Source: Octopus bimaculoides
Lineage: Eukaryota
Assembly: GCF_001194135.2 (NCBI RefSeq)
Contig: NC_069005.1
Location: 26,924,261 to 26,972,415, forward strand
Reading direction: 5' to 3'
Length of the DNA stretch: 48,155 nt
A program made the translations under genes and the position numbers. Shown in pieces: positions 199 to 37,566 of the stretch (position 1 is the first letter of the stretch; every line of letters starts with the position of its first letter). Below the pieces are notes generated by a model. It was not told the DNA's origin. It saw only the letters and a program-made list of their open reading frames with translations, and searched no databases.

Positions 199-2275
199 CT
201 GGCAAGTAGAGGCTCCACCTTGTCTGAAATCTCCGGCACAGAGAACTCCTTCAGCAATTCGCATCCTTGACCTTCTTGTACATACATCATGGGGGATAGC
301 TGGAAGAGCCACTTTGTATAATTCGTCAGGACTGTTTCCTTTAACTGAAAATAACACAATTGAATGATGGTTAATATCGATTGACGATGATTAAACTGAG
401 ATGATAGGAACATCAGATGAAGATTTCATGATACTTACATTGGAAATCTCCCCATCCAGCAGCGATACATCTTCGGGTACCAAATGTTTCTCCTTTTCTG
501 GCCAATTGTGCAAACTTGACACATCTGCCTTCACGGACTGGTTCGCTCAAAGTCAATATGGCAATGTCGTTCTCTGTAAGGGTAAAATATACGTATATAT
601 ATATATGTTAGACATACCTATATGCTGGTCATGAATATATATGTTTCAATAGATATATACAGATATATATGATGTATATACATATAACAGACATACGTGC
701 AGTATAGACATAAATTTATATGATAGCCATAAATAACATTGTGTGTGAGTGTTTGTATGTATGTATGTATGTATGTATGTATATGTGCAGAGTGATTGAA
801 AAGTAAACTCCCTGTTTTAAAATTCTTATAAATTATTTATTAATTGTAATTTTTACCAAAAAATATCTGAAAACGTGATAATCGTAATACTTACGAATCA
901 GGTATGGAGTATGTACGTATCCACCATGTTTCAGAATTCTACTTGCAGTTGTTGACTGAGAACCAGGACTCCATTTGTTTTTGGAACCAATATTTACTTT
1001 AACCCTTCTGACATTTCCTTCGCTAAAATCAAATCAAATATGGCAAATCTTTAGCAGACAGTAATTCTATACCGTTATATACTTGAAATTTGTCCATTGA
1101 CTATAAGCATTGTAATATGAATCTCATATTGCTCTGTTATTATTAAACGTTATTGTCCATTTAAATGTTACATTTCGGATCGTTTGTGTTATTAAAATAT
1201 ATTTCTGTTGGTTGTTCGTCTGAACGATATTAAACGCACAGAAAGTAAAATAAATAATTAATACACACAAAATGTAGAAGAATGTTCAAAGATTGAAGTG
1301 TTGTATTCATTTGACACAATATATTTTTAAGAACACCAAATATATATCTTATACTCGGTGTTCTTCTTATTGATTTCAAACTTTGGCACAAGGCCAGCAA
1401 GTCTGGGGTAGAGAGTCAGTGGATTATATCGGCCCCAGTGTTCGACTGGTACTTATTTTATCAATCCCGAAATGGGATGAAAGATAAAGTCAACCTCGGT
1501 GGAATTTGAACTCAGAACGTATAGACGGGCGAAATACAGCAAAGCCTTTTTCCGGTGTGCTAACATTTCTGTGAACTTATCGCCTTATTTTCATCTAAAT
1601 ATATGCGCTCGTTTATGGTGAAAGTCAATATATTCTAAAATTGTTAGAAAAACAAAATCCAATGTAAACTTTAGCCTGCAATTAAAGCCAGTATATACGC
1701 TGCTATTTATACCAATGTCAAATTCTGTCCAACCTCTCTATTGTACAAACACAGAAACTAAACTTTCTTCATAAACATCAACTGATGTAATACGAAGATA
1801 CGAAAATACTTACAGGCAGTGAGCTGCTGTCAATACTGTGTAGAATCAATCAAAGTACCTCCACATAAACTAATCATGTTATCTGTGGGTTGGTTAAATA
1901 TTTGAAGGTGGACAATTGAAGGAAATTCGCAGTTTTGTGCTGGAGTTCCATCGACGATCTGTGTTTTAGGTGCTGAAAGAGAATCACAAAACGATATAAA
2001 TATATATTTGTAGATAAAACATTTTTCAATGTCTATGGTATATCGATTACTGTAATTTATATGGTTGTAATTTTGAAAGCTTTAATTAATTACAAAAAGT
2101 AACAATCTTTCCGGACATATTTTCGGCATAAAATTAATGATTTAAAAATACTGACACCGAGATATATGCTGATATAAGTAAACTAGTGGGTATCAATACC
2201 AGCTTCGGCGGAAAGACATGACTTGCCAGCAAAAACTGAAGCAACCAAAACAAGAAGACAACAGAGAGACAACAT
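199..2275 (-). pseudogene. S1 serine protease paralogue A; frameshifted in exon 2; exon 6 outside the window
   Basis: Exons 2227-2275, 1814-1972, 895-1022, 439-573, 199-344. Exon 2 is 159 nt versus 160 in all other copies: caatac-tgtgt-agaatc versus caatac-gtgtgt-agaatc. This gives ...IDSTQY-stop before the catalytic His. Mature N-terminus is IVDG. Intron 1 has a GC donor. A sequencing error cannot be excluded. Confidence 0.8.
1378..1590 (-). mobile_element. SINE family 3 in intron 2 of A
   Basis: Same core as 40070-40500. Other copies are at about 44690-44830, 45005-45180 and 47035-47225. Confidence 0.72.
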
Positions 2276-2343
2276 GGTGATTCTAAGTGTTCAGTTATCT
2301 GTGGAGAATAATTCAACTGATGCTAGAGTTATGGATCGTGTGG

Positions 2344-2351
2344 TATTTATA
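2344..2351 (-). promoter_or_regulatory. TATA box of A
   Basis: TATAAATA on the minus strand about 70 nt upstream of the ATG, at the same position as in B, D, E and F. Confidence 0.7.
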
Positions 2352-34679: not shown

Positions 34680-34687
34680 TATAAATA
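34680..34687 (+). promoter_or_regulatory. TATA box of F
   Basis: TATAAATA at the homologous position. Confidence 0.7.
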
Positions 34688-34755
34688 CCACACGATCCAT
34701 AACTCTAGCATCAGTTGAATTATTCTACAAAGATAACTGAACACTTAGAATCACC

Positions 34756-37566
34756 ATGTTGTCTCTCTGTTGTTTTCTTGTTACGGTTGCTTCAGTTTTT
34801 GCTGGTAAGACATATCTCCCGACTTGAAGTGTTACGGTTTCGAACTTTCCAAAACTGATATTGATACCGACTGTTCTATTGATGTCAGTCCTGAAACCAG
34901 TATCGATATCTTTAAATCACTAATTTCATGTCGAAAATATGTCCGAAAAATGATTTTACTTTTCATATTTGATTAATGCTTACAAACTAGCAACCATATA
35001 AATTACAGTATTTGATATTTCGTAGACATTCCTGAATGCCCACAAATATATATTTATATCGTTTTGTGATTCTCTTTCAGCACCTAAAACACAGATCGTC
35101 GATGGATCTCCAGCACAAAACTGTGAATTTCCTTCTATTGTCCACCTCCAAATATTTAACCAACCCACAGATAACATGATTAGTTTATGCGGAGGTACTT
35201 TGATTGATTCTACACACGTATTGACAGCAGCTCACTGCCTGTAAGTGTATACATTTACAGATTTACGTTTTCCCATCTTTATATTACATCACTTGGCGTT
35301 TATGAAGGGTAGTTTAGTTTCCGTGTTTTATAACATAAAGATTGAAAAGAATTTGATGATGGTGTAAATAGCAACATATATCAAGCTAAAATTTACATTA
35401 AATTTTGTTTAAAACAACTTCAGAATATATTGACTTTTCACCATAAGCAAGTAGGAATATTTAGATAAAGATATATATTCGATTTTCAACTAAAAATTAT
35501 ATTGAGTCAAATGAAGAAATAACATTTGACTTTCTATGTGTCTAACCATTCGTGGGTTGGCGGGGTCCCTTAGGACCCCAGCAAATTTTGAAAGTTATGC
35601 AACTTTTACATTTTTTATTTAAATGATTTTATATCTCATAACTTTTATTGTCAATAGTTTATATATGCTTGTACAAATAACACACAAGATCCGAAATGTA
35701 ACATTGAAATGGATATCAACGTTTAATAATTACACTGCAATATAAGAGAGTTCTATTACAATACTTTAATGAATAGACAAGCAGTTTAATATCCAAAAGG
35801 AGAATTTCTAGTATATTACGGTATAAAATTACTGTCTGCTAAAGATCTGCCATATTTGATTTGATTTTAGTGAAGGAAATGTCAGAAGGGTTAAAGTAAA
35901 TATTGGTTCCAACAACAAATGGAGTCCTGGTTCTCAGTCAACAACTGCAAGTAGAATTCTGAAACATGGTGGATACGGACATACTCCATACCTGATTCGT
36001 AAGTATTACGATTATCACGTTTTCAGATATTTCCTTATAAATTCTTTCTTCCTCTCAACCATATATCACTAAATATCAGTGCTTCATCAAGTTCAGTCTC
36101 GTGTTAATATATGATAGCTGTTGTCTGATGTTTTCCTTTCAGAGTTCTTGTAATGATTATTTAAATACTGACATTTCCTCCCCATTGTTCATCACCTTTT
36201 AGCCAAACATTCAAAATATACTCATCAGACCTAAAGTTCTATGTAAAATATCTACATCTCCGCTGTAGTTACTGCTAGTATTACTGATGCAGCTTACATC
36301 GATGATGATAATGATGGTGGTGGTAGTGGTGGTGATGATGATGACGACGAGAACAATGGACGTATCATTTGTTGATATTTGAGTTTGATTTTTTGCAGTT
36401 ACATTGCAACAAAAATGCTGCTTAAACTTATACTGTGTATCATATATGTCTTTCAAATCAATACGTTTAACATATATATATATATATATATATATATATA
36501 TATATATTAGAGGTATATACATCGTATATTTCTGTATATACCTAATGACACACATATATGCATCGCTAGTATACATGTATGCCTAACATATGCGTATGTT
36601 TTCCCCTTACAGAGAACGACATTGCCATACTGACTTTGAGCGAGCCAGTCCGTGAAGGTAGATGTGTAAAATTTGCACAATTGGCCAGAAAAGGAGAAAC
36701 ATTTGGTACCCGAAGATGTATCGCTGCTGGATGGGGAGATTTCCAATGTAAGTATCATGAAATTTTCATCAAATGTTCCTATCATCCCAATTTAATCATC
36801 GTCAATCGATATTAATCATCATTCAATTGTGTTATTTTCAGTTAAAGGAAACAGTCCTGACGAATTATACAAAGTGGCTCTTCCAGCTATTCCCCATGAT
36901 GTATGTACAAGAAGGTCAAGCATGCGAATTGCTGATGGAGTTCTCTGTGCCGGAGATTTCAGACAAGGTGGAGCATCTACTTGCCAGGTATGTTATATTG
37001 ATATTATAGCATACTAACTTCAAAGCCGCACATTTCAGAAAGCTCTCGGTATGATATTCCCAGCATGGACCTTTCCTTAGTCGTCTGCATCACAGCTAAT
37101 CGATGTTCTTCCCTCTTCGTCGTAGCCATATCTCGCTTACGTACAAGAGAGTACTGGAATGGCGGTATTATTGATGAGACTAGCACGAAGAGTTTTGTTC
37201 AACTTTACTTTGAACACATCTTTTATTGAGATAAACACCCTCAAATTTGCCCATATTCTTCTCGGGATTTCAGTCTCCATTTTCGACACGCATTCATTGT
37301 TTGCTTCAAATAGTCGTACTTCTTAATTTCCTCGATTTCATCGTTTCCCACTTCTTTTTGGCCTTGAGCTACGTTTTCATTAAATATAAAATTATATTGT
37401 TTGTGTTTTTTTGCAGGGTGACTCTGGTGGTCCACTTTATTGCCCAAGTTCAAATGGTCAAATGGTTTTGGCAGGCGTAACATCCTTCGGACGTAATTGT
37501 GACATAGAAATCAGCACTTTCAGCGACGTTGGATATTTCCGAGACTGGATCGAGAGTAATCTGTAA
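34756..37566 (+). CDS. Secreted chymotrypsin-like S1 serine protease, paralogue F (intact)
   Basis: join(34756-34804,35081-35240,35871-35998,36613-36747,36842-36987,37417-37566). APKTQ-IVDG, TAAHC, QNDIAIL, GDSGGP. C-terminus [27 protein letters not shown]. Confidence 0.94.
37015..37370 (-). mobile_element. RTE-like LINE fragment in intron 5 of F (antisense to the gene)
   Basis: ORF 37004-37186 has MATTKREEHRLAVMQTTKERSMLGIS. It is homologous to 28860-29150. Confidence 0.72.

Follow-up and report, generated by a model that had tools for sequence, protein, structure and literature searches.

An old array of alternately oriented S1 peptidase genes in Octopus bimaculoides, with exons probably homogenised by gene conversion

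The DNA considered here, a stretch of 48,155 nucleotides from the Octopus bimaculoides chromosome record CM046625.1 (assembly GCA_001194135.2, a gapped short-read assembly), hereafter the window, carries six copies of a S1 peptidase gene, named A to F, which alternate in orientation as A(-) B(+) C(-) D(+) E(-) F(+). These genes are read as the right end of an S1 protease array that is old and conserved, belongs to the cephalopod SP1 clade and has had its exons homogenised by gene conversion, with a probability of about 0.8. The evidence carrying this reading is a disagreement within the genes: by their introns, the copies are matched to orthologues in Octopus vulgaris, while by their exons, clades are formed within each species.

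According to this reading, the six lineages and their alternating orientation would have preceded the separation of O. bimaculoides from O. vulgaris. Later, short conversion tracts centred on exons would have moved sequence among the copies, both in direct and in inverted orientation and, together with purifying selection, would have kept the coding sequences 95-100% alike within a species as the introns drifted, resulting in a mimic of recent expansion. Copy C and its O. vulgaris counterpart v5 would have dropped out of this exchange, changing their amino acids about as fast as their silent sites with the frame remaining open, and the single-base frameshifts of A and D, as well as the extra duplicates and fragments of O. 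vulgaris, would represent an added, modest turnover.

The six gene copies and their family

The copies were located with bovine chymotrypsinogen (tblastn) and with the exons of copy B (blastn), and repeated blocks are visible when the window is compared with itself. In window positions, the genes and the spacers between head-to-head neighbours are the following.

199-2275, minus strand: copy A; exons 2275-2227, 1972-1814, 1022-895, 573-439 and 344-199, with exon 6 left of the window
2276-6267, no strand: A-B head-to-head spacer; 3993 bp from ATG to ATG, in a single gap-free contig
6268-10014, plus strand: copy B, intact, 255 amino acids; exons 6268-6316, 6598-6757, 7353-7480, 8716-8850, 8945-9090 and 9865-10014
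15514-19526, minus strand: copy C, diverged; exons 1-5 at 19526-19478, 19207-19048, 18457-18330, 15888-15754 and 15659-15514
19527-22930, no strand: C-D head-to-head spacer; 3405 bp as assembled, holding the gap 20553-21120 and the repeat 20400-20552
22931-26229, plus strand: copy D; exons 22931-22979, 23235-23394, 23966-24093, 25219-25353, 25448-25592 and 26080-26229, with the gap 25762-25871 in intron 5
28337-32470, minus strand: copy E, intact, 255 amino acids; exons 32470-32422, 32139-31980, 31447-31320, 30155-30021, 29926-29781 and 28486-28337, with the gap 28641-28851 in intron 5
32471-34755, no strand: E-F head-to-head spacer; 2286 bp, with a gap of 10 N (34564-34573) inside the conserved promoter of F
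34756-37566, plus strand: copy F, intact, 255 amino acids; exons 34756-34804, 35081-35240, 35871-35998, 36613-36747, 36842-36987 and 37417-37566

Each gene is built of six exons of 49, 160, 128, 135, 146 and 150 nt, and the introns are of the GT-AG type, with the exception of intron 1 of A and E, which has a GC donor. An initial annotation made from the letters of the window alone had singled out 199 to 37566, limits which correspond to the 3' end of A exon 5 and the stop codon of F, and its description of the structure is borne out by the searches and exon models: six copies of a six-exon gene with a strict - + - + - + alternation, spacers given as about 4.0, 3.4 and 2.3 kb and now measured between the ATGs at 2275/6268, 19526/22931 and 32470/34756, and a tally of three intact copies (B, E and F), two frameshifted (A and D) and one diverged (C). 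Copy A has lost 1 bp in exon 2 (ACACAC to ACACA, between 1837 and 1836), which shifts the frame before His57, and copy D has lost 1 bp in exon 5 (at ~25498, where a run of four C has become one of three); both are out of frame upstream of Ser195. Copy C has ~85% nucleotide identity to the other copies, its exons 1-5 are open, and it retains His57 and Asp102.

The protein of copy B matches the profile PF00089 with E = 2e-45 (155.7 bits, for a cut-off of 20.6), its residues 22-251 aligning with profile positions 1-220 of 220, and its best relatives of solved structure are fire-ant chymotrypsin (1EQ9), human chymotrypsin C (4H4F) and porcine elastase (1BRU), with E values of 1e-29 to 1e-30. This agrees with the chymotrypsin-like, secreted type of S1 peptidase first proposed for the genes, secretion being a prediction. 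When the spliced B protein was searched, as the initial annotation had suggested, the closest named proteins outside genome annotations were SP1-Abd-10 (76%), SP1-Oct-1 (75%), SP1-Abd-7 (71%) and SP1-Par-1 (69%), over 99-100% of the query, all of them nearer to copy B than P0014, a paralogue of the same genome (64%). These SP1 entries of UniProt are taken by us to be transcriptome products of the posterior salivary gland of Abdopus, Octopus cyanea and Pareledone.

The window genes might also be ordinary chymotrypsins of the gut or digestive gland and not salivary or venom enzymes. The octopus digestive gland also produces chymotrypsin and trypsin (PMC12607849), and most copies have a low ratio of nonsynonymous to synonymous substitution (dN/dS), unlike many fast-evolving toxins, but the alternative is considered unlikely given the SP1 entries as nearest named relatives and what is known of the gland. 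According to Whitelaw et al. (2020, PMC7656900), 17-20% of the gland-specific expression of O. bimaculoides comes from expanded serine proteases, in line with the earlier statement that S1 peptidases are major gland proteins of octopods; the gland serine proteases of 11 cephalopods all fall within a cephalopod-specific clade and, in O. bimaculoides, they dominate the expression specific to the gland. Moreover, in Paroctopus, O. maya and O. hubbsorum, 'Chymotrypsin-1' has been validated as a salivary-gland marker by quantitative polymerase chain reaction (qPCR), with higher levels than in the digestive gland (PMC12607849), and, in our reading of its primers, which encode WGDLGW, it fits the 64%-identical P0014, located 10 Mb away. 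The marker was also considered as one of the window genes and rejected, as the primers find no match in the window at up to 3 mismatches. The salivary-gland link is well supported for the SP1 clade, and for the six window genes it may be predicted from their sequences.

Age of the array and conversion of its exons

The initial annotation had taken the locus for recently expanded, with copies alike since they are young. That reading draws on exon identities of 95-100% among A, B, D, E and F, on the two frameshifted copies and on the extra copies and fragments of O. vulgaris, but it is contradicted by the introns and by the gene order. The O. vulgaris sequence used for the comparison, ~100 kb of the gap-free chromosome OX597838.1 stitched from five loci, contains, in window orientation, a distant S1 gene (+), v0(-), v1(+), a fragment, v2(+), a fragment, v3(-), v4(+), v5(-), v6(+), the fragment v7(-), v8(-), v9(+) and a Swi5-domain gene. 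The complete copies v0-v6, v8 and v9 are intact in nine of nine cases, with 255 amino acids and the catalytic triad.

Trees were obtained by neighbour-joining with bootstrap on MAFFT alignments of introns 1-3, of 768 coding positions and of third codon positions. In the intron tree, A-v1, C-v5, D-v6, E-v8 and F-v9 are each joined with 100% bootstrap, and B is joined with v2, v3 and v4, also with 100%. The introns of v0 and v1 are 92-98% alike, these two being a recent inverted duplicate equally related to A, which is co-orthologous to both. The genes C-D-E-F and v5-v6-v8-v9 follow the same order and orientation. Over 1441 well-aligned columns, the intron distance is 0.09-0.17 between orthologues and 0.22-0.34 between paralogues of one species, that is, 2-3 times more. 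As the introns give orthology at 100% bootstrap and those of the paralogues are so much more diverged, the six lineages predate the split of O. bimaculoides and O. vulgaris; the array is clearly old and conserved and not recently expanded, and copies that are alike because they are young have become a quite improbable explanation.

To the right of the genes, 38209-45242 aligns collinearly with the sequence past v9 (89-95%), indicating that in both species the array ends with copy F or its orthologue; in the O. vulgaris counterpart of this right flank, the Swi5-domain gene is annotated on the minus strand. The suggestion that the array may continue to the left of the window is plausible, since the O. 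vulgaris array has S1 copies beyond the orthologues of A, and it is drawn from the synteny with that species only. In O. sinensis, an independent assembly, a - + - arrangement is found without gaps, and its exons are those of O. vulgaris at 98.6-100%. The same - + - arrangement occurs in Argonauta hians (BAAFZT010000067.1), where the ATGs of a head-to-head pair are 483 bp apart, the arms of the pair are ~94% identical including their introns, and a unit of ~15 kb stands in tandem at 97.5% identity. A tandem repeat with a period of 22 bp occupies 14073-14637 of this Argonauta locus. The head-to-head pair as the unit of duplication was rejected for Octopus, as the intron tree does not separate minus-strand from plus-strand copies and the pair partners C and D are sisters; the Argonauta unit, which holds a pair, shows that this route of duplication exists elsewhere.

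The exons result in a different tree. Over the coding positions, B, D and E group with 100% bootstrap and v3, v4 and v6 with 99%, and the orthologous pairs defined by the introns obtain 0%, except for C-v5 with 100%; at third codon positions, the same two clades are recovered with 92% and 83%. Third-position distances are 0.09-0.13 between orthologues and 0.05-0.14 between paralogues and, when divided by the intron distance, they amount to ~1 (0.6-1.25) for orthologues and to 0.11-0.47 for paralogues within a species. In addition, the longest tracts of perfect identity between paralogues each cross the border of an exon.

26022-26246 and 28320-28544, inverted: D-E identical tract, 225 bp, comprising intron 5 and exon 6 sequence and the 3' flank; candidate conversion tract
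7315-7491 and 23928-24104, plus strand: B-D identical tract, 177 bp, comprising exon 3 and the adjoining end of the intron on either side; candidate conversion tract
2213-2353 and 32408-32548, minus strand: A-E identical tract, 141 bp, comprising the TATA box, all of exon 1 and the GC donor common to both genes; candidate conversion tract

The GC donor was probably copied from one gene to the other between A and E, because it lies inside the 141-bp identical tract; the two sites are on the minus strand, at 2226-2225 in A and 32421-32420 in E. A silent ATC codon in exon 5 is common only to A and B. The exons of E are of the B/D type, while those of v8, its orthologue by introns, are of the A/F type. 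By its introns 1-3, copy E is orthologous to v8, and by its 3' part, intron 5 plus exon 6, to the fragment v7 of O. vulgaris. At 57207-64731 of the O. vulgaris array, v8 has an exon 6 and 3' flank resembling those of v9, and it is followed by part of an exon 5 and by a B/D-type exon 6, which form fragment v7; so, once the two species had split, the tail of v8 was replaced through a duplication that was partial and inverted, its first 3' end persisting as v7.

Taken together, the species-wise exon clades, the tracts crossing exon borders and the discordance with the introns indicate repeated short gene conversion, centred on exons and acting in either orientation, alongside purifying selection, as judged from these sequence comparisons (dN/dS of 0.06-0.4 for most pairs). 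Purifying selection alone, with silent sites included and no gene conversion, would account for that range and for the high conservation of exon 3 and of the proximal promoter even between species. Such selection does not explain why paralogues within a species are closer than orthologues and form the exon clades given above, even at third positions, nor why the identical tracts extend into introns and flanks, why the silent ATC codon is confined to A and B, and why E and v8 differ in exon type, leaving very little probability to an account without conversion. Assembly error is not thought to produce the pattern, because similar tracts are also present in the long-read assembly of O. vulgaris and the exon sequences are replicated in O. 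sinensis, although it may contribute to single tracts of O. bimaculoides. Chance plays no part in the six copies being found. For the array as a whole, an artefact of uncollapsed haplotypes, misoriented contigs or chimeric exons, to which the six gaps of a short-read assembly, one contig without counterpart in v5 intron 5 (13885-15006) and frameshifts located in short repeats could point, is refuted, as the A-B and D-E joins each lie within one gap-free contig, the introns of the copies differ by 22-34%, far above haplotype divergence and excluding the haplotypes that the initial annotation had named as a risk, the gap flanks are collinear with O. vulgaris, and the same architecture is seen in O. 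sinensis and Argonauta hians.

Some points weigh against an old array homogenised by conversion. The left part is not collinear, since v0/v1 and v2/v3/v4 stand in O. vulgaris where O. bimaculoides has A and B, and the ancestral arrangement there is ambiguous. The trees are neighbour-joining trees on MAFFT alignments, not full likelihood or recombination analyses, and alignment errors at repeat insertions in the introns could inflate the distances between paralogues, though these were limited to the 1441 core columns. Errors of the gapped short-read assembly could underlie both 1-bp deletions and some of the identical tracts. Finally, the sole published qPCR marker of the salivary gland from this clade is a paralogue other than the six window genes.

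Besides conversion, there has been turnover, seen in O. vulgaris as v0/v1, v2/v3/v4 and three gene fragments and in O. bimaculoides as the frameshifts of A and D. The birth-and-death evolution first proposed for the locus is retained in this modest form, beneath conversion, and not as the source of exon similarity, which is attributed to concerted evolution by exon-centred conversion. Each of the frameshifts results from one base lost within a short repeat. The orthologous v1 and v6 have intact frames, and dN/dS is 0.13 for A-v1 and D-v6, as for intact copies, with no sign of relaxed constraint; thus, the frameshifts are either very recent inactivations or errors of the short-read assembly.

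Copy C and v5 are sisters in both introns and exons, with 100% bootstrap in each case, which implies that they have been left out of the exchange. The pair has a dN of 0.122 and a dS of 0.126 (ratio 0.96), with 70 differences distributed evenly over the codon positions (26/21/23) and with no stop codon and no insertion or deletion (indel) in 618 nt. When sets of 70 substitutions were placed at random in a simulation, a stop arose in 91% of them, and the nearby introns have ~0.18 indel events per substitution. The frame being open over this length despite so many differences, it is being maintained as the protein sequence alters quickly, which fits diversifying selection or a constraint strongly relaxed but not absent, and v5 is complete, with 255 amino acids and the catalytic serine, as is the O. 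sinensis orthologue P0009. The propeptide ends in KRK before IDGG in C and in RRR before VGGG in v5, the other copies having Gln at this place, and the TATA box is mutated to TACTCATA in C (19602-19595, minus strand) and to TACACATA in v5, every other copy of both species having TATAAATA. As the change of the TATA box is common to C and v5, it predates the species split.

It can be speculated, more doubtfully than believed, that the alternating-pair layout of octopod salivary protease genes has been retained since it favours short conversion targeted to exons and so would keep a high-output battery of enzymes uniform for longer than a species lasts, and that C/v5, having escaped with a mutated TATA box and a change of Gln to Lys/Arg and now diversifying, could possibly provide a new venom activity or a zymogen starter triggered by trypsin.

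Protein features, promoters, gene models and gaps

Regarding the catalytic residues, B, E and F possess the motifs TAAHC (His57), DIA(L/I)L (Asp102; NDIAIL in B) and GDSGGP (Ser195). Copy B has paired cysteines at the usual places, and its N-terminus consists of a hydrophobic stretch of ~16 residues followed by a propeptide of five residues, APETQ, and then IVGG, pointing to a signal peptide, to secretion and to activation of the zymogen at the Gln-Ile bond. The catalytic domain starts with IVGG or IVDG among the copies. By hand alignment to bovine chymotrypsin, the motif GGASTCQGDSGGP places a Ser six residues before Ser195, at position 189, and SFG places a Gly at 216, which suggests a pocket of chymotrypsin/elastase type and a chymotrypsin-like specificity.

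The predicted activation cut after Gln (APETQ|IVGG or APKTQ|IVDG) falls within 6317-6612 in copy B, where exon 1 ends and exon 2 begins, and in the equivalent region in all copies. Gln before IV(G/A/N/D)G is repeated across the cephalopod clade, as ETQ, AEQ, NEQ, GEQ, NKQ, NLQ and KEQ (proteins P0003-P0038), with Tyr or Gly before the junction in more distant members and Lys/Arg in the C/v5 lineage. Other S1 paralogues are present on CM046625.1, at 16.7 and 35.2 Mb: P0014 and P0029 lie 10 and 8 Mb from the array, the gene of P0014 being annotated across 34.7 kb, and at 35.2 Mb two trypsin-domain genes stand tail-to-tail.

Upstream of each ATG, ~350-450 bp are 83-94% conserved in all copies of both species, far above the introns. 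In this block, TATAAATA is found 76 bp before the ATG in A (2351-2344, minus strand), B (6192-6199), D (22855-22862), E (32546-32539, minus strand) and F (34680-34687); each gene thus has its own proximal TATA-box promoter. A shared bidirectional promoter in the spacers, for which a distance below ~1 kb was the criterion, was rejected, as the ATGs are 2.3-4.0 kb apart and each gene has its own conserved block with its own TATAAATA.

Copies B, C and F exist as RefSeq gene models. The protein of copy B, encoded at 26,930,528-26,934,274 of CM046625.1, is 100% identical to XP_014782044.1, 'chymotrypsin-1-like [Octopus bimaculoides]'. The model of copy C, XP_014782043.1 (211 amino acids, from 19526 down to ~11285), has unrelated first and last exons and lacks the catalytic Ser195, its odd last exon being, in our reading, a consequence of an assembly gap. 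XP_014782041.1 corresponds to copy F with a different first exon, starting with MVTLSS and not with the conserved signal-peptide exon, and an older model of F, with 298 amino acids, keeps extra sequence between exons 3 and 4. Copies D and E are absent among the RefSeq proteins retrieved.

The window has a G+C content of 35% and seven runs of N. Six gaps fall in the stretch of the six genes, two of them in the tail-to-tail region of B and C (13185-13884 and 15007-15354) and the others in the C-D spacer (20553-21120), D intron 5 (25762-25871), E intron 5 (28641-28851) and the promoter of F (34564-34573, 10 N); none of the detected exons is interrupted by a gap. The A-B head-to-head pair is contained in the single gap-free contig 1-13184, and exon 6 of D and exon 6 of E, tail-to-tail, in the contig 25872-28640. 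The flanks of the last four gaps have the order and orientation of the gap-free O. vulgaris array, in which 3 bp separate the sequences that border the 10-N gap. One gap has a predicted content.

13185-13884, minus strand: assembly gap, predicted site of copy C exon 6, expected at ~13283-13432

Exon 6 of copy C was not found in the read sequence of 10015-15513, using tblastn with bovine chymotrypsinogen and blastn with the exons of B. The sequence downstream of v5 (36498-36627) matches 13051-13184 at 94%, the match ends at the edge of the gap, and the stop codon of v5 lies 98 bp past its end, so that the exon is predicted inside this gap. The other gap of the region, 15007-15354, was rejected as its site, since the v5 homology points to 13185-13884. 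Between both gaps, a contig of 1.1 kb (13885-15006) lies inside the would-be intron 5 of copy C; it has no counterpart in intron 5 of v5 (566 bp), its only match in O. vulgaris being a repeat of 93 bp, and it could either represent an insertion specific to the lineage or have been misplaced in the assembly.

An unclassified interspersed repeat occurs at 11949-12284 and, inverted and 96.7% identical, at 43868-44203; a partial third copy (20400-20552) adjoins the gap starting at 20553, and pieces related to the 11949-12284 repeat are dispersed across the O. vulgaris array. Intron 3 of B contains an open reading frame of 199 amino acids (7673-8272), with an inverted, 76%-identical counterpart in intron 3 of C (16573-17189). 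It has no Pfam match and is probably a decayed mobile element, the source of much of the variation in intron 3 length (321 to 2441 bp). A Pfam scan of the longest non-protease reading frames of the introns and right flank gave nothing significant.

Meaning and comparison with known systems

S1 proteases as components of saliva are well known, and so are multigene families in clusters and the process of gene conversion. In a limited literature search, no prior description was found of the alternating-pair architecture, copy-level orthology and exon-limited conversion in cephalopods. The significance of the locus is mainly for reconstructing the history of cephalopod venom genes: exon or protein trees of the SP1-type family would give a wrong history, the true orthology being given by introns and flanks and, because conversion resets the divergence of exons, dating the "lineage-specific expansions" of cephalopod venom proteases by coding sequence would overestimate recent duplication. 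The locus also offers a compact conserved promoter and a contrast of homogenised copies with one escaped, fast-changing copy.

With the digestive chymotrypsins and elastases of solved structure, the octopus proteins have the catalytic motifs in common; their residue assigned as 189 is Ser. Classical vertebrate zymogens are cleaved after Arg or Lys; in contrast, the octopus copies have Gln before IVGG, except in the C/v5 lineage. The SP1 S1 peptidases and the S1 type peptidase of Octopus kaurna share with the window genes the short predicted signal peptide, the Gln-Ile junction, the triad and the cysteine pattern, but those sequences are derived from transcripts, without genomic context, whereas for the window genes, the structure, orientation, promoters and orthology of each copy are resolved. 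The work of Whitelaw et al. (PMC7656900) deals with the same species and with an expansion at the family level, called lineage-specific, whereas the array of the window is common with O. vulgaris; as far as could be found, it contains no head-to-head pair layout, discordance of introns and exons, or gene conversion.

Among clustered protease genes in other animals, the salivary kallikrein (Klk1) arrays of rodents are likewise made of salivary S1 protease genes. Klk1 arrays are mainly tandem repeats of the same orientation, expanded independently in mouse and rat. The octopus array differs in that its copies are old, stand in alternating orientation and have orthologues across species. One paper on Klk1 has positive selection in its title, and gene conversion is among its frequent terms (PMC3114847).

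Inverted pairs of Hsp70 genes (PMC5865164, PMC3071340) are likewise paralogues kept near-identical by conversion and purifying selection, with flanks that diverge. Hsp70 genes are intronless and homogenised as a whole, whereas the octopus tracts are short (~100-250 bp) and fall on single exons of a six-exon gene. Unlike in the Hsp70 inverted pairs, the donors and acceptors of the octopus tracts are not confined to the two arms of one pair. Palindromes of the Y chromosome and the trypsin cluster of Drosophila are further cases of inverted or clustered paralogues in which coding similarity is maintained by conversion.

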